A DNA stretch of 64,000 nucleotides from Bugula neritina (lineage: Eukaryota > Animalia > Bryozoa), in assembly GCA_964035545.1 (NCBI GenBank), contig OZ037768.1:2388741-2452740 (forward strand). The letters are read 5' to 3'. The translations under genes were made by a program, and so were the position numbers. Positions 700 to 61,983 of the stretch are shown piece by piece. Numbering within the stretch: the stretch's first letter is position 1; every line of letters begins with the position of its first letter. The notes beneath the pieces are model-generated. The model had not been told where the DNA came from. It did not search any database and saw nothing but the letters and a program-made list of their open reading frames with translations.

Positions 700-10021
<9,322 letters not shown>

Positions 10022-14900: not shown

Positions 14901-16977
14901 GACATCACGAAGAGAATAAGAATCACAAGTGTTCTCAGTGCACGGTAGCTTTCTACAGCGCAGGTAACACATTACTATAGCGCAGGTACCACATTGCTAT
15001 AGCGCAGGTACCACATTGCTATAGCGCAGGTAACACATTGCTATAGCACAGGTACCACATTACTATAGCACAGGTACCACATTACTATAGCACAGGTAAC
15101 ACATTACTATAGTGCAGGTAACACATTACTATAGCGCAGGTAACACATTGCTATAGTGCAGGTAACACATTACTATAGCACAGGTACCACATTACTATAG
15201 CACAGGTAACACATTGCTATAGTGCAGGTAACACATTACTATAGCGCAGGTAACACATTACTATAGTGCAGGTAACACATTACTATAGCGCAGGTAACAC
15301 ATTGCTAGTACATAAACCCCTATCTATAGCACTATTGTATTTTTGATTTATATCCGAGTTTATTAATTTACCATAGCACATGTTTACAAAAAATATTCTG
15401 TACCTGTCTGGTTAAAAATAAATTAGTTAGCTTCATCTTTCAAGTAAGCTTTAAATTATAATTAAATCAATATCGCTGAACTGTTTGTGTAAATTTTGCT
15501 ATAATGTTTTACATTACGTTCCTAAAAAGTTGCTATTCGTAATATTTGCAAATTGGAAAGATATGATTTCAACAAGCACTTCCGTTCTCTTCTGCAGAAG
15601 AGCTACGTCTGCACGTGCTCACTCACACCGGACTCAAGCCGTATCTCTGCTCAGAGTGCGGAAAGTGTTTCTCTCGGCAGCAGACGCTGAAGAACCACAT
15701 GAGGCAGCACAGCTGGTGAGAACAGTCTGATCTTGTTTCCTGCAGCCTCGTATGTAATAACTGTTCGCTACTAGATGTCTGTATTTCCTGTATAATCTGG
15801 TCGGTTTGTTTCAGTGACGTGACGGTATATTCTTGTGACTGGTGTCCGGATGCTTTCACCTCGGCACACGCCTTGTCACGACATAAGATGTCACATAAGA
15901 GTGGTACTGATGCTGTGACGCCGGAGGCTGACGGGCTGGTGGATGATGTCATCAACGAAGAACTCGATGTCTTACCCAAAGAGATGTTAGCCGCTTATTG
16001 TGATGAGAATACTTCTTCTCAGGACATCTTAGAGGTGAGACATTATAGCTCTTAGTTCACTCTTAGTCCTGTTGTTCATTTATTTATTGTATTATGAAAT
16101 AGAGACTGCTTTTAGTTTAACTTGAAAGTTATAATAACAGTTATATTTGGGAGTTATTCTTTCATTACTCAACTATTGAGAGATGGGCCCATTTAATGAA
16201 GATAGAATAGATATTGTTGGAACACATCCGGTCAATAAATGTCAGAAAAACTGTTCAAAGAAAAGTTATATTGAACAAATATTTCAACTTGACCAATCAA
16301 GATTGTCAACTTAATTTTTTTAGCAACAAAATGTAGGTGCTTTTCTGTTTATGCTTCTGACCAATCAAATAGAGGTATTTATTAGCAGTATCTCATTGGT
16401 CTAGAATTAAACAAGTAACCAACCAGAATTGCCACACTATTTGGTGCTATCCTTGAGGGAATGTAACACCTGCCAATCAGTGAAACTCGCCTGCCTGATT
16501 GTGCAAGGTTGACGTGGCCATTTTTTCCATTATTAAATATTTGTTGCAACAATTTATTCAGTCCTTAAAGCTCGTTTTAAAACTAATATGCTATATATTA
16601 ATAGGGTGCTGCATTGTATATAATAATATGCTATATATTAATAGGGTGCTGCATTGTATATAATAATATGCTATATATTAATAGGGTGCTACATTGTATA
16701 TAATAATATGCTACATATTAATAAGGTTTTGTAAATCACTATTGCAGTAATTAAATCGACAGACCCTGTTTTATTGGACAGACAAAAGTAAATTTTTTTT
16801 TCTCGTATTCAAAATTAGCCTTATATTTTGTTAGATAAACCATGAGGTGAAAACTCCTTTTCTAGTATTCTGATTAGTAAAGTATTTTTGTATAGTATTT
16901 TTTCAGTCATACATGTCATAAGATGATGCATACATGTATATTATTTCCAGGCGATATCAAGGACACATATGTTCTGA
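11930..16977 (+). CDS. C2H2 zinc-finger protein, 9 fingers, ~454 aa, 10 coding exons
   Basis: Exons 11930-11977, 12257-12347, 12854-12929, 13038-13192, 13604-13816, 14231-14435, 14752-14963, 15598-15715, 15815-16034, 16951-16977 (1365 nt in frame). Fingers CDQC, CGKC, CDVC, CDIC, CDVC, CDLC, CSQC, CSEC, CDWC with HTGERPY/HTGLKPY linkers. First and last exons are less certain. Confidence 0.88.
12375..12580 (+). repeat. 20-nt minisatellite (AATAAACTCAGTGTACGTGT-like) just downstream of a donor
   Basis: About 10 degenerate copies visible. Confidence 0.85.
14953..15306 (+). repeat. 22-nt minisatellite containing the splice donor (CTATAGCGCAG|GTAACACATTA), 16 donor copies
   Basis: CAG|GTA recurs every 22 nt from 14964 to 15294. 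Confidence 0.95.
16585..16725 (+). repeat. 40-nt tandem repeat, ~3.5 copies
   Basis: AATATGCTATATATTAATAGGGTGCTGCATTGTATATAAT repeated. Confidence 0.85.
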
Positions 16978-18245: not shown

Positions 18246-21200
18246 TCAGTAGTTGAAGTAATCAGGGACCTCGTCATCTGTCCACAAGACTTTAGGCACA
18301 GTTTGCATCATCTTCTGAGCTGAACGTCTGTAAATAAATATTAAACAGTTTCTGATATTCTCCACGAATAAATAACTATTTTAATGGACTTTTAAAGATT
18401 GAATAAAAATAATTACAACATATAACAGCGTAAGACTTATTAGTGGTACATCAATAAAAGCTTAAGATTACTACTGTTTTCATAGCAATGCATAAATGAG
18501 TTATACTGCTTTTACTGACAATATCACACTATATTATACGATCTCACATTATATTATTATGCTATACCACACTATAGTGTGCCATATTATATATTTATAC
18601 TATATTTTACTATTTTATACTATATTAGTTATTAAATGTGTTATGCGCTTTAAAGACTTGAAATAAAAGTATTTCAAAAAAATTCTAGATTCAAAAGTTG
18701 ATAATATAACTAACTATAAAGGTTGCAAGCTATTAACTCAACAAGACTGTTTTCTAACATCACTGGATCAGTTAACTTACTTGGTTATTGCCTTGCAGTA
18801 AAGGACAGACACACTACGCAAGTTCTTGCATCCTTTTCTAAGATATCTCATTGCCTTGTCTCTAAAATGTGTTGGGTTGTGCAATAATAACTACTCAGTA
18901 AGACATTAAGTGTACACAACAAATATCACATTGGTATTGCATCACCACAAATAAGCTGACTAAATTTCCAAGTTGGCCAATTTTAAATGTAGAAAAATAT
19001 GAATTGGTTCATCTTGAATAAAATGAACGCCAGCTCAGCTGTTATCAACAAATGGCTACATATAGCTCTGGTATACTATAATAGGATGTACATATAGTAG
19101 AACAACAATCCTGATTCTAGAGGAAATATATGCAACTTTCTAGAAGCTCTGGGGCTTAGCATTGAGTGAAATAAAATTATTCACTTTTCAACACAGCTAG
19201 CTAAATGTCTACATTACAGATGTATTTCTAAAATGCAAAGATAAAAAATGTATTATGCTAGTTCACAACCAATTAACCAATCCAATGATTATATTGAGAA
19301 ATCTTTACTATTTATCCCAAAAGACAAAGTTAATTTATTTTTCATTCAAAACTCAGTTTGGCCTAATGTAAACATATATAACTAGACCTCTTGAAGATAA
19401 AACAACTCCTAGTGGAAGTGAGGGTGGATTAGTTTAGGTCAAGGACCAAGCGCTGCCAAATAGTATGTGCTGCCGCAAGTTGACATACTTACGTCAGCAA
19501 GATGCAGCCACTCATGTCCAGCTCCATAAGGTAGTGACATACACCAGAGAGGTACTGTACACTCTGGTCGGTTAACTATATAGTAATATAGTAATACAGT
19601 AATATACTAATATAGTAATACAGCCATGCAGTAAGTAATAGCGTAATTCAGTAAAGCAGTCTTACAATATAGTAATACAATGTCACAGTAATGCAGTAAT
19701 ATAGTAATACAATAATACAATAATACATTAACATTGTAATTGCAATAGATAATTTAAAAGAAAGAAGCTATGCAATACAAATAAACACTATATACAATAT
19801 AAATAACTAACATTTAAAAAATATTATACTAATAACTAAATGGTGTCTATTCAAACATCTTTCAACATAATACTTCAAGTAAAAAATTAAGTTTGCTTAA
19901 TTAAATTGCTCAAAATGAAAATTCTAGCATAAAAATTCTCACCAGTTTGCATCCAGCAAGGTCAAGGACGTTCAGCAGACGACAACAGAATGCCAGATTC
20001 TTGATGGCACCATCTGTTAGATTCTGAAATGATTGCTAATAAGTCATGCAAAATGCTTTCAATTTTTAAGAAATTGTTACATTCGGCATAACTATATCTG
20101 TCTAAAAGCACATTTGGTATTACGGATCACCACTTTTGGTATTACCACATCTAGTTTTACTACAGACAGCCTGATAATCACCCTGCATACCCACCTTACA
20201 ATGTGCCAAACTCAGCCTGTTTACATCTTTACATTGCTGAGCAAATTTCTGTAGCCCTAAATCGGTTATTTTGTGGCACTCGGCTAGGGTAACATCTTTG
20301 AATCTAGTATTGTTGCCAAGAGCAGACAACCCCTGGTCCCCGCAAGCACAACCAGAGATGTCTAGAGAAACGAGGCTATGAGTCTGTCCCAGCAGTTCTA
20401 TGCCAGCTTCACTGATGTGTTCACAGAAACACACACTGAGGTAGGCTAGGCTGTGACACCTACCAAAGATTATACATACTTTACAGGTCAGACTGTTCCT
20501 CTTTTTAAAGAGTATATATAAATATTGTAGAAACAATAGGTAAAGTAATAACTGCATGCACATTACAGGTTTTAACACAAAGTCTGTAGGCAATGCATTT
20601 CATGGGATGCAATAATTGTGCCAGAATACGACAATTACCAAAGAGTAGATAAATCCTATCATATAAAATTATAGTTACAGTAAATAGTGACATACATAAC
20701 AAGTAAATTTATTATTAAAGTTTGTTAAACTAAATAGAACAATAAAATATACCTAAACTAAGAGAGAAGACAATTCCCTGCTTACCTCTTGTGTATATTG
20801 ACCAAGGCAATGTCGCCCACTCGAATACAGTTTGTTATGTTGAGCTCTCGGAGTTTCGGCCCCGATGGTCCGTCAACTAAATACCTGACACCTGTGTCGG
20901 TTATCCTACAAGTTATGAGAAAGAAAATAGTCGGTACTGTGATGTTTACTGTCTCGGGCAAAGCAAGTTGATCATGTACAAATTGCTCTTTAGTCTGACA
21001 GCTTAGCAGACATTATTTAAACCATATTTCTCCATTTTGAAAATAATTAGTCAACAAAAGATAGGAGTTGTTAAAAGCTTTTACTCATTTTCTCTGCACG
21101 TGAAGCATTATGTAGCTGATTTAGTTACAATATTAGTATGACTCAAAGATGATTGGCCATCACTGCCTTATCCCCCACCCCCCTTCACCTGATTCACTCA

Positions 21201-24200
21201 CCTCACACAGTCTGCTACATTCAGCACCGTGAGATTGCGACAGGAAGCCAGTGCTTTCAGAGAGTGGTCTGTGATTCGCTGGCAGTCGGAGATGTAGAGA
21301 TGAGTCAGTTCTGAAGAGAGTTTCCCGATCAGCTTGACAGCCGTGTCTGAGATAAGCTGATTGGCTGGAAGGGACAGCAGAAATATGCTAAGAGTTTAGG
21401 GTACATTAGATACAACGTTAACTTCCAGCCAAAATACTGACTCAAAAAAAAAATTATTTTCAAGCAAATACTTGTGTTTACCGTTTAGTGCACAACTACA
21501 TATATGGGGCAAATTTAAACTATATAATATATGCATATAACAGCTAGATACATTTTGAAAAAAGCAGTATATTATAATAGTAAGTTTGAAAAGGTTGAAA
21601 AGAGGTATTTCAGGACGAATCCGCACCTTCAACTCGAAGCCGTCGAAGAGATTTGGTATTTGCAAGACTTTTGAAGGAATCGTCTGTGAGAAACTGAGTC
21701 CCAAGGAGAGATAACTCCTGTACTTTAGTTTTCTTTGTCACCTCCTGTGAGATTATACAGTAACACAGTACAACACACCTGTATGCCATTGTCATCTAAT
21801 GTAATACCACACACCTGTATATCATTGTCATCTAGTGTAATACTACACACCTGTATACCATTGTCATCTAATGTAATACTACACACCTGTATACCATTGT
21901 CATCTAGAGTAATACTACACACCTGTATACCATTGTCATCTAATGTAATACTAGACACCTGTATACCATTGTCATCTAGAGTAATACTACACACCTGTAT
22001 ACCATTGTCATCTAATGTAATACTACACACCTGCATACCATTGTCATCTAATGTAATACTACACACCTGTATACCATTGTCATCTAGAGTAATACTACAC
22101 ACCTGTATACCATTGTCATCTAGTGTAGGGAAGTCATTGAATATCAGGTTCTTCAAACCAGTACAACCAGTCACTAAAGACTTGAGCCCCATAGTTGTCA
22201 GCTGTCCAAACAGCATGTCATAATTATGTAATATTAGAGAACATGAAGTCAACAAAAGTAATTTGAAAAGTAACAACATATTGGCAGTACTAACTCCAAT
22301 CTTATATTATGAATTCAGTATATACATGCAATCTACTTTGTTCTGCTTATATTAAAAGTTATAGTACAGTTTTCAAGAATGAAAATAACAACTTAAGATA
22401 TTACAGAATGGCTAAAATATGACTTTGAGTATCGAATATAGAATAATATAACAATATTATTTTATATTCTATAATAACTAAAATAAAACACAGTATATAT
22501 AATATCACATTATACAGTATAACAATAGTATAACACAGAATATATACTATAATATAATACTGTGTAACTACAATATAATACAGTACATAGAATATAATAT
22601 AATACATTACAATACAGAATAATACAATAGAATACAGTACAATACAGTGTATAAATCATAGTGTAAAAGCAAAGGGTTGCAGACCCACCTGGTGGCATCC
22701 AGACAGGTCCAGGTAAACTAGTCTCTTGGCACCTTTCCCATTACCTAAGTACTCCAACCCTTTGTCTGTCACTTTGAGACAGTAGGCTAAGCTAAGGAAG
22801 GACAGATTCATCAACCCCCTGTAAATCATTAGAGAATCTCGGTCTAAAAACATACCAAGAGATTAAACTACAAATCAACTAGCCTATAGTATACTAGACA
22901 CTATGCTTGTTTGTCTTATCATTTCTAGCAATAAAAAAGAAACAAGTGGATCAATGATTTTACCCATTTACTGTTTCCGTCATATGTGATGTCATCAAAA
23001 CTGAACATTAGATTACATCAATGCTGCCGGTAGAAACAAAATTAGATGATGCCAAAGCACGAAAAATATTATATATAGATTTAAAAAATATTTTTAAAAA
23101 AACTTTAAAAATATTGAGTGACACTTTTGTTGTAAAATAACATGTTACATGGTTTAATACCAACATAATATGTGAATATACAACATGGACGACTCACATA
23201 CTAGATGGACGACTCACATACAACATGGACGACTCACATATTAGATGAACATAGCAGACGAATGACTCACTTGGCTATGAGACGGCAGCTGCCGTCTGTT
23301 ATGGAAGTGTAGGAGACGTTGAGATACAGCAGACTACTGCAGCCCTCACTGATCAGCTTCATCTGGTCGTCCTGGCAACCACAAACAGCAAACTTAAAGT
23401 TGTTACACTGATTTAAGTGAAACGTCCGATATAGTATATACATGCATTCAGTGAATGGGGTGAGGGTCACAATAACTTGTGATGACAATGCTTTAATATT
23501 ATTTAGTGAAAACATGTCATCAACTGTCTATAACTTAGCTATAGTCTGATTTTCTGCTGTTAAAAAAGAAACTAAACACTACAATTTATAACAATAGGAA
23601 TATAATCTTGAACGAAAACACAACAGACTTCCAAGTGCTTTCGTATCTATTGAAGAAAATTAGTTTTCAGTGTGAAAATAGTTATTGGGAATTGGGAGGC
23701 CATATTCAGAAACCCTGCATTTATTATTGATAGCATAAGGATATAACAGCTGCGTGTACCGCTTCTAGTCATTTACAAATTATACCTTCATACAGTATAA
23801 TACATGATAGCAACTGGTTTTAAGCAACTGGCTATTATAAAAATATTACACCCCAAACAATACATTCTAATCTAAAAATAAATTATCTACAAAATAAATT
23901 AACTTAGATTTGATCACAATTGATCATGCAGTAAGTAGACAAAGCGCACAGCATGGTTCTGTATGTAAAGTGCTACTCACGTTGAAACCAATGCACTCGG
24001 AGACGTTGAGATCCTGGAGATTGCGACATTCACTGACGACCTTGAAAGTGTCCCAGCTGACGCTGTGCACGGCTCTTAGATTTAGATACGACACATAGGA
24101 TCTACTCTTCATCAGAAGTCTACAGGCTATCTTATCCGTCACACTAAATATACAAACAAAGAGCTCTGAAAGACTACTTATATGTTAGTTGCATATTAAC

Positions 24201-35915: not shown

Positions 35916-36363
35916 TCAGTAGCTGCTATCTAATAGGGTGTTCTCATGCATGTCATAAAAATAGTCATTGTGTTAAGCTAATCTTCAATTATTTGCTTTT
36001 TAATTTTTAGCTCGTGTCCTGCTGCTGTCTCCTGCTGCTTGTTTCGCTTTACTGCACTTCATAATAAAAATAATATAATTTTGTTTTTTATAGGTTGCCT
36101 GAAAAATGTTTGCTATTATCAATTTAATGGTGCGATTTAATGGTGCCCTTTAATGGTTTTTCAATATACCTTCACTACCAATTAATATGTTTAGCCATGA
36201 CTGGATGGTTATATAATTGTTTTCCCATCTTTTCAGATCATCCATCTCCTATCTGGAGACAGTTACATAAAAGCAATTAAAACTGCATTTGTCTGGTAAC
36301 AGGTTTGCTGTCGCTCATTTAGGTGAAACATTTCAGTGAGTGCCCGCAGTGTTTCCCTTCCCC

Positions 36364-39300
36364 ATGGAATTGCTCAACAAGTTTCAGGATTGGTTTTTCA
36401 ACAAAGAGTTTTGGTTGGCAGAAAATGTGACATGGAAAGACCTTGAGAATAATGCAGATGACGGAATATACAAAGCACAGCCAGCTGATCTCTGGGCGGT
36501 GTTTCCTACAGCCATTGCAATATTTATAGCACGACATTTATTTGAAAAGTATGTTTAACTCTTACAGCACTATTTCCTGATAAACTCAACTGAAATTCTT
36601 AGAATGTTGTATATAATTCATGAGAAGTGGAAATGGGTAGCTCTTATTACTTCAGTATCAGTAATAACTGAATGCTGTAAAGATTATCAGTGCTTTTTGA
36701 ATTATTCACGCAAATATCATTTTAAAAAACTGATAGGAAATAAATTGGCTCGTGAAGGTTAATAAACAATACCTATCTCATTATTCACTATAATTGTATG
36801 TCTGATTTAATTTGCACTTGTCAATTTGTTTCTCTTTGGTCATTGGGATATGACTTAAAATTTTTTCAAGTTTCTAGTTGATGTGGCATTGTTGTATTTG
36901 AAACTTGCTGTATTGCGCTTGTATCTGTTAGATTTGTTGTGCTTTAGTTTTGTCGCCAAACCGTTTGCTCAATATTATGGGGTATCTGAGAAGAAGGCGT
37001 ACGCTACTCCAAACCCCCATTTAGAAAGGATATATAGACAAAGTTCCTATCCAAGTCAACATGTAGTGGAGGTATGTAGTGCTGGTCCACACTTTATATA
37101 GTGGTGACTAGTTAGTAGTTGGCCACTGAGCTGTGACAGCTAAATACTATTTCAAGGTGCAGCAACTTACGTGTTTTATTTTTTAAACAGAAGAATCTAT
37201 CCCCCCCCCCCCCCCCCCCGTTAGGTAAATGCAGTTTGCAGGTAGATTGCAGTAGTGTAACACACTAAATCCTGAAAGTCTTTATTAGGTGTATTTTATC
37301 CTAAAGTCTTGTAAGTAGGAGATGTTTCACACCTGTAGCTTGTCTGCCAGTATTAACATATGATTCACGATATGCTTTCTCAGTCTCATTACCCTGCAAT
37401 ATAGGAGGTGGTCAAGCCCTGCATTGGTTAGGCAACTCCCAAATGAGTTGGAAACCACTTCTCCGTTGTTCTCATCTGTATTGCAATGCAATAAATCAGC
37501 ACTCATAATATTTTTGGAAGTTCATTTTTCATTTCAAATCTTTATGGTCAACATGAGCTTTGTGGTTGATCTACTGTATAACATGTATAGAGCTGTATGA
37601 ATGTGTAACATTTAGCAAGCTGTGAAACAGACCGACCTGACGGAAAAACAAGTGCAAAGGTGGCTCCGTCGTAGACGAAATCAGAGTCGCCCTACTGATA
37701 TGACGAAGTTTACAGAAACTGCGTAAGTTGTGTTTGTGTTTTGTTACTACTTATAGAATGTTCTTATCAGTTTGATAGATTCTTACTCCGTAGAGAGTAG
37801 AATGTAGGGATCACGTAATAATTCCTTAGATAACGTACCTGTGTTTTTATCAGCTTGGATTTGCATTAATTTTCACTCTAGGAGGTTATGTTATGGTATC
37901 AAAAACATTTCCCAGCAACTGCATCTAGACCTTGGTTTAAGTTGTTGAAGGGTAACTAATGTAAGAGGAAGTATTCAAGTTGAACTGGTCATTCCTTTTA
38001 ATATTTCACTTTTCTCAACAGCTCTTGTCATTTTAATAGACATGTATGCAAACATTGGTATGGAGTCATTATATAGGTCACATGGATATTATATAAGTGA
38101 CAGTAAAATAAATGACGTTGAACATTCATATCTCTTTCTTGTGGGTAATAATCTTGTCAGATTATATAATATATTGTTTTATCTGTGGAAGATGTGTAAT
38201 TGATATGCTATTGTTCTCTGCTACCAACTTGAATACTAGACTATGATAGGGTGTTATGTATTATGTTGTGTGTTCAGAACGCATTGTGTATTATACAATG
38301 TGTAGTATACAGTGTGTGCAGTGTGCAGCGTACACTGTGTAGTGTGCAGTGTGTACTATACAATGTGTAGTATACAGTGTGTATAGTATGTAGTATACAC
38401 TGTGTAATGTTCTGTGTGTAGTACAAAGTGTATTTATTAATATTATATTTTACAGATGGAGGTGTTTCTTCTATATTGCTATATTCATATACGGACTATG
38501 CACTCTCTACAATGTAAGTGTACTATACTGTATAGCTCATCACTCTATAATTACTACATAACTCAACAATATATTATCCAGCCATTCACTACCAACTCTG
38601 TAATTACAATGGCACTCCTTCCCTTCCACATTTTCCTTGTCCTCTACAGACATTATAAACTGATGAGTACTCCTATCCTATCCTACATTGTGAGACACAT
38701 ATTGTGTCTGATATGGAGGTGGCACTAATGAAGAAGCTATTTTATAGAGTAATATCTTCATTCATTTTTGTGGAACTTGAAACACTTTAGTTGTTGCAAG
38801 TCGCACTGCTTATGCTGGTTATGCTGGTAGTCATGATCTCACATAGGTTCAAAGTTTCACACTATTTATCCAAAAGCACAAGTGTTTTGGGCATACCTTT
38901 TCCATTCTGGACTCAACCTGTGTGATTTATATGCGAAGAATTTTGTCTTAAATTATTTGTATTAAACTGCTAAAATAAACCTCCCTGTTTCAGAAATCAT
39001 ATTTATGGGACGTCAAAGACTGCTGGAGGGGCCACCCTTTCCAGGTATTGTGTGTTTCCACATGTAGATGCAAATAACTAAGTAAAACTTGAGTTTTTCT
39101 CTTGGGTCGCTATTTGTCACATATATTGATGTACTGCCTTGTCTGTTATGTTGCTGTCAAGTTTAGTAAGTTTCTTGTAGATAGTTTGTAGTTTGCATAT
39201 GCGCTGTGCCTTTAGACTGCGTGTTTGTCATTGTAGCACGTGACAAATGATGTGTATTGGTATTACGTGGTAGAGATTGGCTTTTACGTCACTCTATTAT

Positions 39301-40828
39301 TTTCTCAATTTGCTGATGTCCAGAGGAAGGTAACTATGATTAGTTATTATATATTATACTTTAATATTTTGCCAATATAGTCTGGAATATTCCTTTTGGA
39401 ATTGAAATGATAAAATATGAGTATAATTATTACCAAACAAATGTTATACACCCTGGACATGGTATTAGTGTTGGTTATGTAAATAGCAGACCAACAAACT
39501 TGATTTGTTAGCCGAAAATCAAGTTGCAGATATTCCTATCAGCTTTACTGTCATGGCTCTTACTTAGTTTGCTGGCTACCTGTGTAGTGTACAGTGTAGT
39601 GTACTGTGTGTAGTGTACTGTGTGTAGTGTACTGTGTGTAGTATACAGTGTGTAGTGTACAGTGTAGTGTACAGTGTACTGTGTTTTGAACAGTATGTAG
39701 TATACTGTGTGTTGTACAGTGTGTAGTATACTGTAAATTATGGTGATTTTTACTGCAATGCAGAGATTGTTGAAACTACTTTTTCATTTTACAAACATGT
39801 GGTTGAATTCTGGTTGCAGGACTTCTGGGGGCAGTTTCTTCACCACATAGCTACCATATCATTGCTTTGTTTCTCTTGGTTTGTAAATTTTGTTCGGGTT
39901 GGCTCGCTGATACTGTGCCTCCACGACGCCGCAGACTACCTGCTGGAAGGAGCTAAACTTTTTAAATATCTCAACAAGAGGCTCCTCTGTGACATCACTT
40001 TTGGTATATTCACTCTGATGTGGGCTGTGACCAGACTTACTCTCTATCCCTACGTGTAAGTCATAGGATACTCGTCCTAATACCCTCGTAACACACTTAT
40101 ATTTCTAGAAAGTTCTGTGCACACTTGACACTTTGTGATGCCAACTGTTGAGGAATTATGTATCATACCGTGATTCTAGCTAAAAATGCTACAAGATTCA
40201 TCATTGTGACATCAGTGTATCTGTTTAGCAATATGGAAAAGCAATTTTTCACCATTTACATCGGCTATTAGTTACGGAATAGCCTTGCCATAGAATAATC
40301 ATAGTGCTGTGGGAGTTGTCTACTCTTTCTGTTTAACTTGCCATGTATGTTAGAAGTCATCTTCTATTTATAGAATACTCTGGACGACTATTGTGGATGC
40401 CAGTGCGATCGCCGGTTTCTCCACCGCTCTGTACGTGTTCAACTTCCTGCTGGGAATACTGCAAGTTCTTCATTGCTACTGGTTTGTGATGATCATGACT
40501 GTCGCCATCAGAGCCATCACTGCTGGAAAAGTAAGCACTTGTCACGTGACTTGTGGAGGGGGGGTTTGAGGTTTAGGGTAGTGAGTCCCCGGCAGGCCGG
40601 GGGGCTGCCCGGGGACTCACAATTCTTGATTGACTTTAAGATAAATGGCTACTAAGTTTGGTAAACATTATCTTAATTGTTAAAGAGTCTGCCATAGCGT
40701 GAAATCCCAGTTTTTTTTTCTCTCAGGTTGAGAAAGATGTGCGAAGTGCCAGTGAAGAATCTGACGATGATTCTGTGACCAATCACAGTCCAGATGTCAC
40801 TAACCAATCACAGTCCAGCAGTCACTAA
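36364..40828 (+). CDS. CERS: Ceramide synthase (LAG1/LASS family, homeodomain-containing CERS2-6/schlank type), ~370 aa, 9 coding exons
   Basis: Exons 36364-36548, 36948-37071, 37616-37722, 38456-38513, 38994-39044, 39237-39329, 39820-40055, 40374-40530, 40727-40828 (1113 nt in frame). FWLAENVTWKDL, Hox-like QVQRWLRRRRNQSRP, Lag1p motif RKDFWGQFLHHIATISL...RVGSLILCLHDAADYLLEGAK, C-terminal KDVRSASEES. Most similar in style to CERS5/6. Confidence 0.95.
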
Positions 40829-48002: not shown

Positions 48003-51000
48003 TTAAGCAAAGAATGCCCAAAGAAAGGTAGAGAGCAGAATGAGAATGATGGCACCGACTGCATTCACAAGTCTCCACTTTCGCCCCTCCTCAATTGACA
48101 AGCTCTCTGCTAGCAGCTCTGCTTGCTCGGCATCAGTTAACTCTGGACCCGTCTGTTTTTCTATGCCACAAATCCAATTGACAGCTGTTCTATACCATGG
48201 CAAGGCTGTAAGTGTACATAATCACAGTTCAGTTTGTCTGAATTGTGCAGGCTAAAACCTGTTCAGTATTGAAATTTTTACTAATAAGACAAAGATTTGT
48301 GTTCACACTCTACATCAATATCCAATTCGTGGTACTTGCCACCTTGAATTATTTTTCCATAAACTTCTATCAAAACTTTATAGCTTCAGAATTAGATGTG
48401 CAAAATGCAAATGAAATAAGTACAATCATCAATAGATTTTCCATGAAAACTACATTTAGCTTACACTTGTCTTTCTCATAAATTCAGGCTAAATTAAGTA
48501 ACTCAACTATATTCCATCAAGATTGGACATCATTTAAAATTTACTCAAACAGAATAGACATACACCACAAACTTTGCTCACTTTCACACTTACCTTTGTC
48601 TGCATCTGCCACGTCACTCTCCATTTTGGTATTTCCGTCAGCTAATTGTTCGGTCGAGGCCACACCCATATCATCAACACTCTCAGAGCCGTTCTTCTTA
48701 GTCTCCAGTTCCATCAAATGATCGGGAAGATCATCATCGACAGATTGATCCAGCCGATCTCCAGGCTCATTACGTGAGAGATAAGTCAATCTTACCAACT
48801 GAATATAGTAACAGGAGAAATATCTTTAGGCGTAATTCATAATATTCAATTGTAGTTTTTGGGTACGTTTTTAACAAGGTACAATAGATTTTTCAAGAGT
48901 AGTAAAGTATACCTTCCTAGGATTGATAGGCTTGGTTAGAAGGCTGATGACGATCGCAATAATAGTGGTGAGGCCAAAAAGCAGACAACCAAAGTGCAGG
49001 TAGTGAACTTGGGAGATGATAGCCGGTAGTTTATACTCTTTATCAGAACCACAACCAGGAGGTGTACCGTAGGAGAACTCTACTATAAACCTGACTGCGC
49101 CGACCACCAGACCACACATAAGGGACCAGAATGCACCCTGATAACAAGAAATTTCATATTTATATAACTAAAAGCAGATATAAATCATTTGATAACAATT
49201 TAAACTCTTCCCATGGTAGCTATGCCTCCTTTTCATTTGAAGGTGAAACAAAATCCTAGAATATTATGCACTGATTAGTATCTGGTTAACAAGGCAACTA
49301 TAGTAAACCAATATTTTATGTTAGTGTAAAATGGTGTACTTGGTTTTAACCTTGCAGCAGTTTAGTACATGCTTGTTAAAAGAGTAGGTCAGATAGATGA
49401 CATTACAAACAGAATATCAGCAATACAGCTAATTACTTTACAGATTTATGAAAAAATGATAACTCCAACAGGTAGACTAAATTTTTTGCTAAAAAAGTCA
49501 ACTATAAATGCAAAATAATAAACTATTGGTGAGAGTTGTCGCCTTATTACCGTTGAAAGATAACTCCATAAATACTGAAATGCTAAATTCTATAGCTATT
49601 TAAAGGTTTAGCAACTTTCAGTTCAGCATGAGGACCTAATTGACAAATTTGGTAAGTTTGCTAGTATTTCTTACCTGCTCATTGATTCTTTTGGTGGAGA
49701 TAGCAAGAACATAGACAGCGGCTAATGGAGGGGTGAGGAAAGAAGTAACTTGCTGGATGTAGTGGAACAACTCCGAGAATCCTTGCACAATTGGAATCCA
49801 TGCAATGCTCACACCCACCAGTACTAGCACAGTCAATCTGAATCAACCCATAATCATGCAGTTGTAAGCTCTTGGTCAAACAAACAATATTTTTACACAA
49901 AATATTTTTTTAACTACTTTTACATCACTGCATGATCTAATCCTGATGAGCTTACAAAAAAGTTGAGAAGTACAACTATTAAAAGTCATCTCCCATAAGG
50001 CTAAAAATCAAAACTTCAAAATTTTAAAACATATAATTAGTCTTATTTATAATTATTTTATATATTTAAACATTCAAATACTTTAATTCTTTTGCCAAGA
50101 CAAAAAATAATTGCCTTTGAAGCACATACTTGTAACATAAAAACATTTTTGTATGTATCTAAAACTTGCCATACAAACTAAAGAAATTATGGTTCTGGCA
50201 AAATGCTATGCATGACAACCAATTGAATTTTTATTAAAATGTATAAAACGCTGAGAAAAGTCCTGTCAAATTTTGTAGACTTTAAAAGATGATCACACCT
50301 GTATGAGACAGAATTAACAATAAACAAAGTACCTTAGTAGGTAGCAGACGTTTACCTGGCTACAACTAGCAGCTCTCCTTCAGAGGCATTCTTACGAATT
50401 CTAGTATAGATATCCATAGTGAACAAAGTAGATCCGCTGTTGAAGATAGAGGTGAGGGAAGACATCAGGGCTGACAGCATCACAGCTATCATTAAACCAC
50501 GCAGTCCATCCGGCATCAACTTGAGCACGAGCAGAGGATACGCTAAGTTGGTGCATCCTGTCGCAGTGCCACACACTTTCAGACATTCTTCTTCAGAAGC
50601 ACATCCTACCACACCTGAGGATAAGGAATAGACTATCAAGTATGTTCAGTTCCACCAGGTTTAAACTATTCACACCCGGAACTGCTTACCAAACATGAGT
50701 AGGTAATGTGTTATAGTGAGTGATAATGTTATACCTGTTCTTGTATAGTATCCATACATACCAGGCGTATAGTGTGCTGTCTAGTGCGATGTATTGAATA
50801 TCCTGCTATAAGCAGTCAATTCATTATGGAACAGATTCTTAATATATTACCCACAAGGGTTCCTATCCCAGTGGTTGAAAAACATCTGCAGGTGGTATTT
50901 GGGTATAGTTGAAAGCCTTTGTAAGTCTAAGAAATTAAACAGACAAGTCTTCGCGCCTCTCACTCATTTAAATGACTGATAGCAAAAACAACATGTCTAC

Positions 51001-54000
51001 CGAGAAGGCCAGGAAGTGCTGACACTCACTGGGAAAGAGAATCCGAGAGACCATTCCGGGAATAATGAGTAACCAGAGAGGAGTGAACTTGAGGAAGCCG
51101 GCCAGAATGGTGCCGGCTCTTGCGTAGGATAGATTCTTGGCAGCCAATGTCCTCTGCACAATTACCTAGCATAAACAATAGTAGCACATATTAACAACTT
51201 CTACAAGTTTGAATTTCTATATTTAAGTACAGTAGATTTCTATAGCCTAAGTTCTTTAAGTTTCTTCAAAATATTTTTTGGTTTTGGGAGGGTTGACACT
51301 ATCGAAAGAAAATAACTTTTTTACTATATTTCTCATAGATCTAGAACACAGGTTTTTCTCAATTATTATACCTACATCAATTTTCACCTATTCACGCCAT
51401 TTCAAAAGTAAATTTATTACTTAACAGCTAGCCATGGATAGATGGTAAGTGTTGTATATCATGGTGAATTTGCTTTGAACTAAAACCAGCATTATGAAAA
51501 GAAAATTTTAAAATTCTAGCTGTGAGTACATTTAGCAGGCAGGTGATATTAGAAGCTGGTACATAAACATAGTGTTGAAATATGCAGTAGAGAGTTTATC
51601 AAGCTTAGAGTATTCTATACTAAGATGTATTATATAACAAACGTCCTCAAGTTGAACTAATGCAACACTTCACATCACATTACCTCGCACAGGTAAAGAG
51701 CTGAAGTTTCAAAAAGCAAAAATATAACTAGCTAGTAAAGAAAATAGTGCTGAGCTGTCATTTTATTCTCTCTGTACCTCAACATATTTAAGCAACATGG
51801 CTGCTAAAATCCTAAAAATATTTAAGATAAAATTCGCTGACTTATAAGGGGAAAATCAATACTGTTATATAATCTATCGATTAGCATCTTCCAGTTTTAC
51901 TCATATTAATATAATTTAGTTTTAAATACATTATTTTTGATATCTATAATCAATATGGTTGAGTAAATATCCATTTAGAAATTTAAAATTTTCAGCCCAA
52001 AATGCTAATTTGGTCAAAGATACCCTTACTGAGTTTTTCTTTCATTGTGAAATGCTTTTAAAATTATTCTGCTGTCATCATTCAATCTCAACATAATCCA
52101 ACAATAAGAAAAACATTCACCATTACTGGGGTTACTCACACTTATTGAAATACCTTGCAGCTTATATGCATAGGGTATGTACCATCTTGGTACAATTTAA
52201 AACATTTATTACTAAGCCAGCTGTTGATATGTCATGGTTTTAGATTCTTTGATGATTAGTCAAGGGTTTTACTGAGAAGTGAAGAGAAATTATTCTCTCC
52301 TTACAGTCTCGGTTTCAGATATTTGAAACATGAGATTTTATGGTGAAATACACAAGTTTTACTAGTTCTATATTTTTGAAATTGCAAACTTGACATTGGT
52401 AGCTCATTCGTTACTCTCCAACTTCAAATATTGGCCCTCGACAAGTTGCTGTAAAAATCTACCAAATCTACCACAGCTGTCTGTCTGATGTAATCTAAAG
52501 TCAGAACTAAAAGTCAGACACACCTGGTCGGTGCACCAGTACCAAACACCAGAGATGGTGATACCGAAGACCACCCCAGTCCAGGGCAGATCCGTGGTTA
52601 GTGTAGCTGGTCTCATGAAGTGCATAGCATAGTCGGGCACTGAGCCACAAGTGGTGTTGGAAGACACAGCTTCAGGCGAAAGTGAGGTAAAGAATTGGTG
52701 AGTTAAAGCTTCAAACACTGAGCCAAATTCATCCACATCTACAACTTTGCCTAGTTCCACAAAGCCTTTGAAAGAGAAAGAAATAAGCTGTGAATAAACG
52801 TCATTAACAGTCATCAGCAAAATAAGCGTGCTAAAATAAAATCTGAGAAATAGGCAAAGTGATGCAGTATAAAACAGAATGTTTTGTAATTTGCATTAAG
52901 TTCTAAATAAAAATGTCTAGTAATATAGAGATACTATACAGTGCTATGCTAAAAAGCTCATTTAAACGTAGTGTTTAAATTGCATGAAAATGATATTGCA
53001 GTTCATTCCAAGTTAAATTAGTGCCCAAAATACTATGCTGTGGAGAATTTGGCACTTAAAGCTGTTTGCTCTAATAAACTAAAGCACACCAAAACTGCAA
53101 TATATCAGAGCGATAAGGTATGAAGTGTAGCCTAACTTCACAATAAACTAAAAGCATCTGATAGTGCCCACTCATGAAGATAAAACTTAGCAAAGCTTAC
53201 CAATTAAAATGATAACAGCATTAAGCCCCCAAGTCCAAAATTGTAGATAACATTTCATTTCAGACCACCCACCCTTATTCAAATTTAATTTAAGAAGTTC
53301 ATAGACTACTTTAGATAAAATCTCCCAAATAAGAAGTGATTTAGAAATTTTCTAGCCGTTGGATTAAATCTAGGAAAAGCAACTAGCTGTTTAAAGCAAT
53401 TAAAAGGCTACCTGATCAGTGCACCAGTACCAAATAGAGGAAATGGTGAGACCAAAGACCATTCCAGTCCAGGGAAACGCTGGATCACTCGCTGGACGGA
53501 AGAAGTGCATAGAATTAGCTGGCACGATGCCACAATGGGCATACCGACACTTTGTAGAATTTAGAGCACCTGACAAGCACTGCCTTGTTAAGTTAGGCTG
53601 GCTTTCAACGCCCATGAATTTGCTTACAATTTGGCTGTAGCCGCCAGCCTCAATGTAACCTAGCAGAATATAAGAGAAGGTATCTAGCTAGCTATAGCTA
53701 TAATCAGTATAAGGAAATCTTGATAATGCCATCAGCAAATCATCAACACGAAGATAAATGCAGAATAGAAGAAAATTTGCTGAGCTGTAAAAGATTATTC
53801 TGAGCTAAATCAGTAAATGTAAGTAACAGGTGACTATCGACAGCTAAAATAATCAGAAACATTGTAAATGGAGTTATTTGTTACACTCCGGGATGTTAGA
53901 GTCAATTTCAAAATATATACTTGCAAAAAATAAGAAATTTCTGTAGCATTTTCATCTAATAACTGCAAATCAGTTAGTGCAGCAATAAAGGCTATAAGGA

Positions 54001-56466
54001 GAGCAAAAATGGAATAAATGGACTCACTAAGCACGGCCAATACAGCAGCTCCAATAATTATAATACAAGTCTGAGCAAAGTCTGTCCATATTACGGCTGA
54101 CAAGCCTCCTGAAAAATACAACAATGAGTATTTTGTACCAACTGTGGCCCAACACATACCGTCCCTGTATAATGCATACCAGGAGTAGATTCCAAGTCTA
54201 TCAGAGCCGGGACAAACTAGCTATAAATGCAATAAGCTTTATACAACAAAACGTTTACGCCTATACGTTGTTAAAATGTTAAAAATGCTTGAATTTTAAA
54301 ATAAATACAGCAGCCTGAGTGGATCATAGTATACTGATGACAAATAGTTACATAGTCAATATACAAGACCCACCCAACATACTAAGATAACCAGTTTATA
54401 GTGTTGGATGCAGAGTGAGCAAGGAGAGCTACGTATCTTATCTGAGTTTATAGTTACATTAGTTACATACTAACAAATACTTCAAGATAAGCATACAGGT
54501 TCAGAGTTGTACAAGTAGCTAACCTGCAGTCTACCTGCAATACACAGTATGAGTGAATACAAACCTGCAACTGTCAGAATCAGAGCTAGGAAGAGCAGGG
54601 CCAGGGTCGACTCATACACCCCCCAACCGATAGCCTTCTCCAAGAATATGGCACCAGAATAGAGATCAGCTGATATCTTAGTGAAGATGTAGAGGATGAG
54701 GGACAGAGAAGAGAGGTAAATGCGAATTCTATGACCTCCAAACCTCTTTCTCATGTACTCTGGCATCGTGAACACCTGATGAAGTATCAACTTGTAGAGA
54801 GCATTTCAATCAGATTTGTTTACTTGTGTATTTGGGTAGATAATGTTTACAGATTGAAAGCCTTCCAATTTGTCAGTATGTTATTCACTTCACCTGGTAA
54901 AGCTAACATGTCAGGGCAAAGCAACAGATATCATGGATCTTTGCAGAATTTCAGAATTATCATGTAACAAGTTTACAATATAAACATGGAGAGTGTAAAC
55001 TTACCCCTGAAGCAATGTACACTGGTACAAACACCCATCCCAGCAGCAGCAGAACAAAAGCAGCCTGTAGCAAAACAGATATAATAAATACCTGCTCCAT
55101 TAGGTCTACGGTATACAACGCAGTACAGTATATCCAGCATACTAAACTTATCTGTGGCATTAAAAACTATTAAAAAGTCAAAACTATGGAATGAAACCAG
55201 CCTACTAAAGACACCTTAGAAATGGTGTAGAATTAAAACACCTCCCGTAACACTTAAACATAAATACTCCAAGATCTAACCAAAAAATAACTGTGTCCCT
55301 TGTCTAGCAGCTGCATAAATATATTAATATATATAATAAAGTTGTTAGTTTTTAACTTCTGAAACCAGACACTATAGAGTGTACACAGTAAATAAATACT
55401 GGCAGAGTAACACCTACAGCACAATGTAACCTGTATATTCTATACATGTCAAAATACCTAGTCATCGGTATGTAAATACAGCCAATAATATGATTTGTTA
55501 CACTCTTACACTTCCTGTACACAAGAATCCTACTCACACTGAGTTCAAAGATGGCGACACCAATACCGGCCGAGGCTCCCGAACCAGCTAATCCGACAAA
55601 GTGACCTGACCCAATGTTACTAGCAAACAGTGAGGCTCCAACCTGTATTAGCACAAGTTTGCACCAGTATAACACAAGTATATATAATAATATTCAGTAT
55701 AACACAAGTATATATAATAATATTCAGTATAACACAAGTATATATAATAATATTCAGTATAACACAAGTATATATAATAATATTCAATGTAACACAAGTA
55801 TATATAATAATATTCAATGTAACATCCCTTCTTACTTTATTCAATCAGGTTGAAAAAGAATAAATTATTTGACCCTGCTTATATCGAATTGGGACTGTCT
55901 GCTATCACAAAGCATCATTTCCAGAAAAGTTCACATGGCATAAAGCTTCTTGCATTTAGCTATAAGAATATATTAACTGTACACCAAATTTTGTCATGTA
56001 TCAACAACTTACGGGTATCCAGTGCATGCTTCGTCCAGCTAAGAAGTAGCCTTTAGTACTTCCTCTATTACGACATGATGACTACAATAATTCACATAAA
56101 CTTACAGTGATCAGATTGTTCAAAACATTGCTAAAAAAACTCAAGTTTGATTCTTTTCACAGCCTAATGTTAGGTTTTTAGGACTAGAAACTGCTTTTGC
56201 ATCAAATCACAGTAACAGAGCAAGAGCAATTTTGAATTCGGTGCAAAAATTAAACTAACTGAAATATCTCAACACATTCATTAAACTATACTAAGTATAT
56301 TGCAAGTTGTTACTGTGTATAAAACACTAAATCTTCAGCATACACTCACCCATATGCCAACACCAATAATAGCAACAAAATAAGCTGCAATGACTACGAA
56401 ATCCCATGGTACTAGCTTGGCATTCTTGAGTAAGGAATCAGCATCATATTCTGAAGAGCTCGACAT
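48003..56466 (-). CDS. SLC5A: Sodium/glucose cotransporter (SLC5A SGLT subfamily), 693 or 691 aa depending on exon 7a/7b
   Basis: Exons (minus): 56466-56350, 56081-56013, 55642-55538, 55064-55005, 54775-54565, 54108-54028, [53659-53412 or 52765-52524], 51165-51030, 50614-50356, 49837-49675, 49137-48913, 48798-48594, 48205-48003. Motifs [91 protein letters not shown]. The exact paralogue (A1/A2/A9) is not assignable by eye. Confidence 0.95.
52524..52765 (-). CDS. SLC5 alternative exon 7b (242 nt, phase 1 to 0)
   Basis: tcaaag|GC TTT GTG GAA...GAC CAG|gtgtgt; FVELGKVV...[43 protein letters not shown]. Confidence 0.88.
53412..53659 (-). CDS. SLC5 alternative exon 7a (248 nt, phase 1 to 0)
   Basis: ctag|GT TAC ATT GAG...GAT CAG|gtagcc; [14 protein letters not shown]...[42 protein letters not shown]. 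Confidence 0.9.
55665..55823. repeat. 30-nt minisatellite, ~5 copies, adjacent to the SLC5 exon 3 acceptor
   Basis: CAGTATAACACAAGTATATATAATAATATT repeated. Confidence 0.92.
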
Positions 56467-59611: not shown

Positions 59612-60110
59612 TACTATTTGAATGTGAGTGCAGTTACTAGTTGCTGCTGAGTGTTCTATGTTAGTACGCAACTGTATTCATTGCTCGCGCAATGCCGGCA
59701 GTGCGCTGGTTTTGGGGTTGTTATGTTTTCGCGGACGCAGCTGACAGTTCCAGTTCATTGAGCACTTCTTTACAAAGCCGCCACTCTAAGTATATTATAT
59801 ATAAGTCAGTCACCTACAATTAATTATTGTTGTTTTATATCAATATTTCCGCATACACTTGCCACAACCTATTCCTATTGGTTACTACAAATAATGCCCA
59901 CCAATCATAGAAACATTGCAAGCATGTGAGGAAGCTAAGCCATGGTAGGAAGTAGTTCGGTTAATGGTTTCAGTAAGGAGCAACAGTAACTTTGTGTACT
60001 CCTATCTTATTCATTAAGCGTATTAACTCTTTCAGCGCTAATACGTTTATGGAGTTTAACGGCCTTTAACGGAGATTAGGCGATATTGCAATAGACTATC
60101 GCCAGAAGGT

Positions 60111-61983
60111 ATGATGATGCAGTGGCCGGACAACCATCTCAGTCTGAGTCATTCCACTGGATATAACCCTGGAGTATCAGCTAGTAAAGAAGTCTCTTCT
60201 AGTTCTACACCGACTCAAGTCACAACTTCACTGCATTCGGTAAATAGTAAGTCAGCCAACTCAGGGGAGTTACAAAGGGAGACATCGTCCACCGGCTCGT
60301 CAAGTCAAAGTGGATTTTCTACCGACCATCTTCAGTTCTGTTTGAGCATGCTTCCTCCTAGCTGCTCTTGTAAGTTGTTTTTGTTGCAGAAACTGTGTAA
60401 ACAAACATAACAGGTTTAATCTTTACACATATGTCTTGGCAATCAACAGATATTTTTTTCAAAAGTGCCACGATTACTGAGCAAAGCAAATCGCCTTTAA
60501 ATTGCTTTCCTTAGATGAGGGGTTATTTAAAATTTTTTTAGAGCATAGGCTTTTTTGGATAAATGATAATTTTTACTTGGTGGTGACTATGGTAAAATAT
60601 AATATTAATATAATACTTGTATCTTCATCTTGCTATTTTGTAAGCATGACTCTAAAAATTTATGTTAGGTTTACAAATTTCATAAAATAATTTGTTTTAT
60701 AAGTTTGGATTAACTAAATTACTCCTATAATAGTTTCACTGCGGTTTGGTGTAGATTTCTCTTTCAAAAGGACAGAAAAAACTCTTTTTGCATTGTCACC
60801 AAACAATTAACTTCTTAAATATGAAGTGAACATTTATGGGACAATTACACAGAAAATTCATTCATAGATTTTGGCAAGGACAGCCTGTGTGCTCCAACTC
60901 CATATGCAAGGATCAAATTCTAAACGTCCCAAACAAAAGATTTCAAATTTAAATTTCTGGCTTTCAATCAAAAAATATTTTTTCAGCAATGAGCAATGGA
61001 AAAATCAAATGTAGTTAATATTGGACTCGTGGGCTGCATGATTTAATTTTGTTGACAACTATTTTAATGGTTTATTTACCACTGCTACTTTAACAAGCTA
61101 TAACTGACTATTTACCTGTTACAGCATAGCCATATGTAAAGTATCAGAACAAATTATTTCTAACATCAAAAATTAGCTTACACGATTCCACTAACTTAAA
61201 AAAAACAAGAACTGATGTGATTGAACTTGTAGTTTGCGGAGTGCATCCTGTACAGTGGGGCCGAGATGAAGTACAACAATGGCTGAAATGGTGTATCGAT
61301 GAATTTTCCTTCACAGATGTTCAAACAGAGAAATTTGCTATGAACGGTAAGTAGGGCAATTAGGCACGATTGAATCGCTTCCCTATAGCAATGGTTTCGC
61401 TCTACTTAGTTTGTAAGCAACCTCTAAACTCATGATTCTATTTCCCAGTGGTGTTATTTTCTAGTTTCTTGCAGCAACTCACTATCAATATCTTAAAATA
61501 ATCACGTCTTAAAGCCATTCATCTTAGCACTATTACGGCATTGTTTTCCATGCAACACTCATGTTTAGGTTCATGTTATCTCATGGATATTTTTGTCAAG
61601 CTGGGTTAGTAACTTTTATTTCCTTGTTTGTTCTTGGCTTGTTAGGTTAGTCAAAGTCACATTGATTCTGACTCAATCAGTTGGTGGTGAATTATGTCGC
61701 CAACTCGTCTGCCTATGCATTGCTAAATATATATTGTGTTTTCGCCATCATTGATTTGTGAGACACTGCAACTATTTGCATATTTCATGATGTCATGTTA
61801 TAGCAAAACATCTACCCTATGCTGCTTTAGCTGGAAGTGTTTGTAGATTTTACTTTTTATCTTTTTAAGGTAAAGCTCTGATATTACTCAAGAAAGAAGA
61901 CTTCATTGAGCGAGCACAATCTGCAGGGGATGTGTTGTATAATGTGCTTCAGAAGCTGCTTGAAACGCAAAGTAAAAGCCCAT
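60111..61983 (+). CDS. ETV6: ETS transcription factor of the ETV6/ETV7/Yan (TEL) subfamily, 5' part with SAM-Pointed domain; continues beyond the window
   Basis: Exons 60111-60369, 61233-61346, 61870-61983 join in phase: ...LPPSCSFCGVHPVQWGRDEVQQWLKWCIDEFSFTDVQTEKFAMNGKALILLKKEDFIERAQSAGDVLYNVLQKLL, matching the MNGKAL..L...DF..R...GDVLY signature of TEL/Yan PNT domains. The ETS domain is not in the window. Confidence 0.85.

Follow-up and report, generated by a model that had tools for sequence, protein, structure and literature searches.

A conserved pair of either-or seventh exons in an SGLT-type SLC5 gene of the bryozoan Bugula neritina

Can a single sugar transporter gene supply two proteins by choosing between two neighboring versions of one exon, and if so, what does the choice change? 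The question is raised by an SLC5 gene of the SGLT type in a 64,000-nucleotide stretch of the Bugula neritina genome (hereafter the window; GC content 34%, taken from a source assembly of 216 Mb in 321 contigs). An earlier note on this DNA had proposed that two tandem exons of this gene exchange the sugar-binding helix and outer loop of the transporter, and thereby its sugar specificity. The analysis presented here supports the exon pair itself, and leads to a more restrained view of what the pair does. The reading that we favor, and consider probable from the sequences compared, is that one Na+/sugar symporter gene carries a tandem pair of mutually exclusive exons that would yield two transporters of the same class, differently tuned.

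One doubled exon in an SGLT-type gene

The SGLT gene is complete; it runs along the minus strand between 56466 and 48003 and has 13 coding exon positions, each bounded by AG/GT (Table 1). Since an acceptor precedes the ATG of coding exon 1, a 5' UTR exon is expected further upstream. The cut-off of the Pfam SSF family (PF00474) is passed by exons 3, 5, 8, and 9; the two versions of exon 7, termed 7a and 7b, have no Pfam match when taken singly, yet they matched SGLT1/SGLT2 chains, and SGLT1 and SGLT2 are the top solved relatives for each exon tested. The sugar-site residues N78, H83, E102, Y290, W291, K321, and Q457, the sodium-site motif S392/S393/T395/S396 and the outer disulfide cysteines (255, 345, 351, 355, 361, and 511) are all present, as they are in human SGLT1 and SGLT2 (SLC5A1/A2; PDB 7wmv, 7sl8, and 7vsi). 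The pattern of Thr395/Ser396 and Thr460 is SGLT1-like. Unlike both human proteins, the gene lacks C517 and C522 and has His at 454, and in the tree it groups with invertebrate genes instead of any vertebrate paralogue. Judged by these residues, we infer that both isoforms would be SGLT1-like sugar symporters.

Table 1. Coding exons of the SGLT gene in the window, and further sugar-type SLC5 genes of the host genome
Feature	Position	Strand	Remarks
Coding exon 1	56350..56466	-	ATG at 56466, acceptor just before ATG
Exon 2	56013..56081	-	spliced model
Exon 3	55538..55642	-	N78, H83, F101, E102 equivalents retained
Exon 4	55005..55064	-	spliced model
Exon 5	54565..54775	-	Pfam SSF
Exon 6	54028..54108	-	upstream donor common to 7a and 7b, phase 1
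Exon 7a (alternative)	53412..53659	-	248 nt, phase 1 to 0, Ser287
Intron between 7a and 7b	52766..53411	-	646 nt
Exon 7b (alternative)	52524..52765	-	242 nt, phase 1 to 0, Gly287
Exon 8	51030..51165	-	downstream acceptor common to 7a and 7b, phase 0; K321 retained
Exon 9	50356..50614	-	C345/351/355/361 and S392, S393, T395, S396 retained
Exon 10	49675..49837	-	F453, Q457, T460 retained; D454 replaced by His
Exon 11	48913..49137	-	C511 equivalent retained; without C517, C522
Exon 12	48594..48798	-	spliced model
Exon 13	48003..48205	-	includes stop codon
Further sugar-type SLC5 genes	C9:3626700-3648300, C3:2590000-2601500, C3:963400-978800		host genome
Further sugar-type SLC5 genes	C6:8631800-8642000, C8:8428200-8435600, C9:8537300-8545000		host genome

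The coordinates, lengths, and phases that the earlier note had assigned to two intact paralogous exons proved exact, with 49% identity between 7a and 7b across their 3' 61 amino acids (E 3e-20). Both are open solely in the phase 1 to 0 frame and both are flanked by AG/GT. Comparison of the whole gene found no duplication of any other exon; exon 7 alone is doubled, which rules out a tandem gene duplication. The predicted consequence of using both exons or neither is also borne out in models spliced by script. With 7a the open reading frame has 693 amino acids and with 7b 691, while joint inclusion leads to a stop at codon 302 and joint skipping to a stop at codon 267. Joint inclusion or skipping likewise breaks the frame in all five exon pairs that have genomic DNA (the Logan/JGI/ENA contigs recovered for the exon pair comparison are all genomic). 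In the mechanism that we propose, exon 6 would join either 7a or 7b and then exon 8, the choice would be regulated, and the out-of-frame mRNAs with both exons or neither would presumably be cleared by nonsense-mediated decay.

Each exon encodes the outer loop that follows TM5, and then TM6 as far as Q295. In 7a the loop consists of a helix, an insert with a Cys pair, two sequons (NLT and NST) and the equivalent of Cys255, giving three cysteines in all (27, 37, and 42); in 7b a 10-residue insert precedes the loop helix, followed by one sequon (NTT) and the Cys255 equivalent as the only loop cysteine (39). These cysteines and sequons are all present as first described. The alignment to SGLT1, which stops at Q295, places the common Cys at 255 and fixes Ser in 7a and Gly in 7b at position 287, again as the earlier note had it. 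Synonymous differences in the motif that the two exons share do exist, but they are modest in number (of 14 degenerate codons that the exons have in common, 6 differ) and not the many that had been claimed. AlphaFold models of the single exons are of low confidence (pLDDT 49 and 58).

Other features of the window are given here for completeness. A 30-nt minisatellite at 55665-55824 (5.3 copies, 98%) ends about 20 nt upstream of the acceptor of SGLT exon 3. A 36-nt minisatellite at 21769-22127 (10 copies, 93% matches) lies in a minus-strand gene with LRR matches (about 20123-20599); it stays in frame past what looks like the end of an exon and seems to repeat the last codons of that exon together with the donor, giving a series of possible donors. 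By Pfam, the neighbors are an NSUN2-like methyltransferase (1589-7670, minus strand), and, on the plus strand, a C2H2 zinc-finger protein (13594-16052), a TLC-domain (ceramide synthase-like) protein (36340-40650) and a SAM/Pointed (ETS-type) protein (60060-61351).

Purifying selection on both exons

Both 7a and 7b are carried by a sister population (L026, L032-L035, and L038) that differs from the window by about 10% in introns, and relative to this population pN/pS is 0.15 for 7a and 0.19 for 7b. Two far more distant sets of contigs, L028/L029 and L036, which are probably two further bryozoan lineages, preserve the succession 7a, 7b, exon 8, exon 9 and intact splice sites, with exon pair lengths of 248 + 242 and 251 + 242 nt, respectively. 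In L038/L035, L028/L029, and L036 alike, the pair agrees with that of the window in order, phase, length modulo 3, and AG/GT. More orthologues of 7a occur in the short contig L031 and the proteins P0030 and P0115. Between the deep lineages pS is saturated (0.67-0.92) and pN is 0.17-0.26 for 7a and 7b alike; protein identity is 59-71% for both exons and the frame is preserved. When a 240-nt exon was simulated under neutral drift to a distance of d = 1.5, it remained stop-free in 2% of cases, with amino acid identity of about 11% and never greater than 25%. Since the real exons are conserved at a saturated synonymous distance (the orthologues set against the simulation have 59-68% identity and an unbroken frame), unlike the simulated neutral exon, 7a and 7b are not chance survivals. 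Both are under purifying selection, and the long-term constraint claimed for them now extends over three synonymous-saturated lineages.

Orthologues of 7a and of 7b form separate strong clades (support 97/87 and 100/96; in a second tree 100/100 and 99/98), which means that the exon duplication is older than these species. Gene conversion between the two exons was considered and rejected, as the copies of one species are no more alike at third positions than copies taken from different species. Evolution is more rapid in the alternative exons than in exons 8 and 9 (pN about 0.25 vs. 0.07-0.15), partly because they encode the loop. Each retains a loop signature of its own: three cysteines with the sequons in 7a, and the insert FGS(L/V)(Y/F)E in 7b. 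One irregularity was seen in the 7a of L036, where codon 278 (approximately 5157-5159) reads Arg (CGC) at a nearly invariant Gly278 through a single-base change; this is either an error, a polymorphism or relaxed constraint.

As for how the choice between the exons might be made, the intron between them, with a range of 263-1078 nt (263, 314, and 1078 nt in relatives), is longer than simple steric exclusion would allow. No shared k-mers, stems or conserved motif above chance were found in the inter-exon introns of the window and its relatives. Conserved RNA hairpins at the splice sites were discarded as a candidate (seen in L036 only, with z-scores near zero elsewhere), as were Rbfox-type UGCAUG motifs, which are absent from the bryozoan introns. 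The 7a donor, GTAGCC, is weak and off consensus in the window and in several relatives, and some constitutive donors are equally weak.

Occurrence and origin of the exon pair

Such a pair is not confined to bryozoans. A scan of metagenome contigs recovered L039, which holds exon 6, two exon-7 copies (at 981-1214 and 2295-2513, of 236 and 221 nt, both phase 1 to 0, with Ser and Gly at 287) and exons 8-11. Its intron layout differs from that of the window gene, and its constitutive exons place it in the same invertebrate SGLT clade (support 91/93); it is a related gene from a non-bryozoan animal, with the pair at the same position. UGCAUG motifs are present in the introns that flank this pair. 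The protein model P0005 (207 amino acids) has two diverged exon-7 copies in a row, with Ser and Ala at 287, and is probably another related gene with an exon-7 pair. Two further related genes, L119 and L040, have a single exon 7 that resembles the first copy. At the Aplysia locus L122 (P0175 cluster), 44% of which is N, several short RefSeq models end by read-through of the exon-7 donor, and a second exon-7 copy may be present. P0006 was not retained as a further pair: its two copies are identical and exon 6 is doubled too, so that it likely represents an assembly duplication or a very recent one.

A single branch of the exon trees divides the first copies, without exception, from the second copies, with weak support (57/79 and 71/77). 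The AU test rejects a recent duplication inside the L039 lineage (p = 0.01) and does not reject a separate bryozoan origin (p = 0.30). One ancient origin of the exon-7 pair is thus possible from these trees. A more far-reaching history would have the pair arise once in an early lophotrochozoan SGLT gene as an ancient selectivity switch, in which the hydroxyl at 287 was lost and the outer lid differed, to be kept in bryozoans and at least two other lineages (L039 and P0005) and reduced to the first copy in L119 and L040; this we put forward tentatively, and consider rather doubtful.

The earlier suggestion that a splice switch does here a job that vertebrates give to separate genes has to be qualified, because this animal has separate genes too. 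The host genome contains 8 further sugar-type SLC5 paralogues (Table 1), each with a single exon-7 equivalent and with varied residues at 283-287. Two tandem pairs are included among the 8. In the nearest three (the C9 pair and C3a) exon 7 is interrupted by an intron, and the start of the loop in the C9 pair is 7a-like; others have odd pocket residues, with Lys, Asn, Leu or Met at 286 and Gly or Ala at 287.

Differences between the isoforms and their meaning

Outside exon 7 everything is common to both isoforms, including N78, H83, F101, E102, K321, F453, Q457, T460, the sodium motif, and C511, and exon 7 itself always keeps Y290 and W291. Most of the divergence between 7a and 7b lies in the glycosylated extracellular loop. 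Across bryozoans the fixed features are, in 7a, an insert that follows the loop helix and carries two extra cysteines and two sequons; in 7b, the ten-residue insert before the loop helix, and one sequon; and, in TM6, M279V and L283I. The claim that the sugar-binding helix and loop are swapped therefore stands for the loop and not for the helix, in which Y290 and W291 do not vary and the fixed changes are only these two.

Structural work on SGLT1 gives these positions their context. The side chain of T287 contacts the C4-OH of the sugar of a bound inhibitor, L286 and M283 contact its C5 substituent, W291 is among the residues that contact the sugar ring, and the protein has a disulfide-stabilized extracellular shelter (PMC9616851). 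Substitution T287N alters the binding of glucose vs. galactose (PMC11061222), and SGLT2 has Ser at 287 (PMC12605011).

One alternative is that the pair is primarily a switch of sugar specificity through position 287, with Ser in first copies and either Gly or Ala in second copies, that is ancestral and was lost in one bryozoan branch. Such a switch is consistent with the second copies in the window group and L039 (Gly) and in P0005 (Ala), which are without the hydroxyl while the first copies have Ser, and with the influence of position 287 on the sugar preference of SGLT1 (PMC11061222). The Ser/Ser combination of L028 and L036 needs one change only, since the two are sisters in both exon trees. 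However, selection maintains both exons in these two Ser/Ser lineages, L031 has Ala in its first copy, the remaining pocket residues are all shared by the isoforms, and 70 of 157 homologous motifs have Ala or Gly at 287, so that chance can produce the pattern. We regard a primary 287 switch as unlikely, and the specificity claim of the earlier note survives only in part: it agrees with L039 and P0005, and not with L028, L036 or the 7a of L031. As the pair is maintained without Gly287 in other lineages, the difference at 287 is not why it is kept everywhere, though Gly287 may matter for sugar handling in this species.

The location of the fixed differences, almost all of which sit in the extracellular loop, could instead point away from transport altogether. 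The two loops would then carry distinct glycans and surfaces that serve trafficking, stability, resistance to proteases or the binding of a partner protein, for example in gut vs. body-wall epithelium, and the number of sequons (two vs. one) and the extra Cys pair are indeed conserved per exon. On the other hand, M279V and L283I hold as fixed differences in each of the three bryozoan lineages, and residue 283 is part of the pocket lining (PMC9616851). This account overlaps with the one we favor and differs from it solely by denying a kinetic effect, and in that exclusive form it seems improbable.

It is very improbable that a partial duplication left one copy dead or never spliced, given that both exons, at a synonymous distance that is saturated, are conserved beyond simulated neutral drift and that the one observation in its favor, a 55-nt frameshifting deletion in the 7b of L026, is most likely an assembly error. 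That assembly (JGI 3300003318) has clean coding deletions of 13, 55, and 11 nt, the 55-nt one in 7b and the others in exons 6 and 9. All three are missing from L038, which has the same sample label and is otherwise near-identical, and the 7b of L035 is also intact. The deletions are thus most likely assembly errors, L026 is unreliable for frameshift calls, and a 7b pseudo-exon was rejected as most likely an artefact.

We return, then, to two differently tuned transporters of one class. In this proposal the isoforms would differ in a glycosylated loop that is tied to exon 11 through the equivalent of the Cys255-Cys511 bond and forms part of the lid of the outer vestibule, and in a few pocket or vestibule residues of TM6, namely 279 and 283, plus 287 in this species. 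Both would remain in the glucose-type class and differ in affinity, turnover, inhibitor sensitivity or surface targeting, and the two might serve different tissues or stages. Gly287 would remove the hydroxyl that in SGLT1 contacts the sugar C4-OH, which makes a modest shift in selectivity plausible in this species.

The arrangement itself has precedents. SLC7A2 (CAT-2A/B), SLC12A1 (NKCC2 A/B/F), SLC25A3, and SLC39A14 likewise have homologous tandem exons of which one is used per mRNA. The isoforms of CAT-2 and NKCC2 differ mainly in affinity and not in substrate class. In solute carriers with tandem exons, combined use leads to frameshift and nonsense-mediated decay (PMC8373072; PMC5740500), and tandem either-or exons in general are well documented, frequently of ancient date, and over-represented among transporters and channels (PMC8373072; PMC9741552). 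In contrast to those solute carriers, the window gene belongs to another family and swaps another part of the fold, the outer loop and TM6. Invertebrate NALCN and calcium channels also use tandem exons to alter a selectivity-determining segment (PMC9741552), but the NALCN exons differ in the selectivity residue itself, whereas the pair described here has no fixed difference at the candidate residue 287. In the portion available of the supplementary tables to a catalogue of human mutually exclusive exons (PMC5740500), SLC7A2 and SLC39A14 are included and no SLC5A entry was found. Literature searches, incomplete in coverage, gave no report for SLC5, in agreement with the earlier note.

The exon pair is real and well conserved; duplicated either-or exons are known in other transporters, and the SLC5 case appears to be new. 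One practical consequence is a trap for annotation, as automatic models retain one of the exons or fuse both, as in P0005. With this gene SLC5 would be added to the families of transporters with duplicated either-or exons. The pair also amounts to a natural SGLT chimera experiment, with two proteins that are alike except for the outer loop and TM6 and that selection has long kept. Comparison of the isoforms would address the role of the little-studied extracellular lid and of residues 279, 283, and 287 in affinity, gating, and selectivity, and the contributions of lid and TM6 bear on the pharmacology of SGLT1 and SGLT2.
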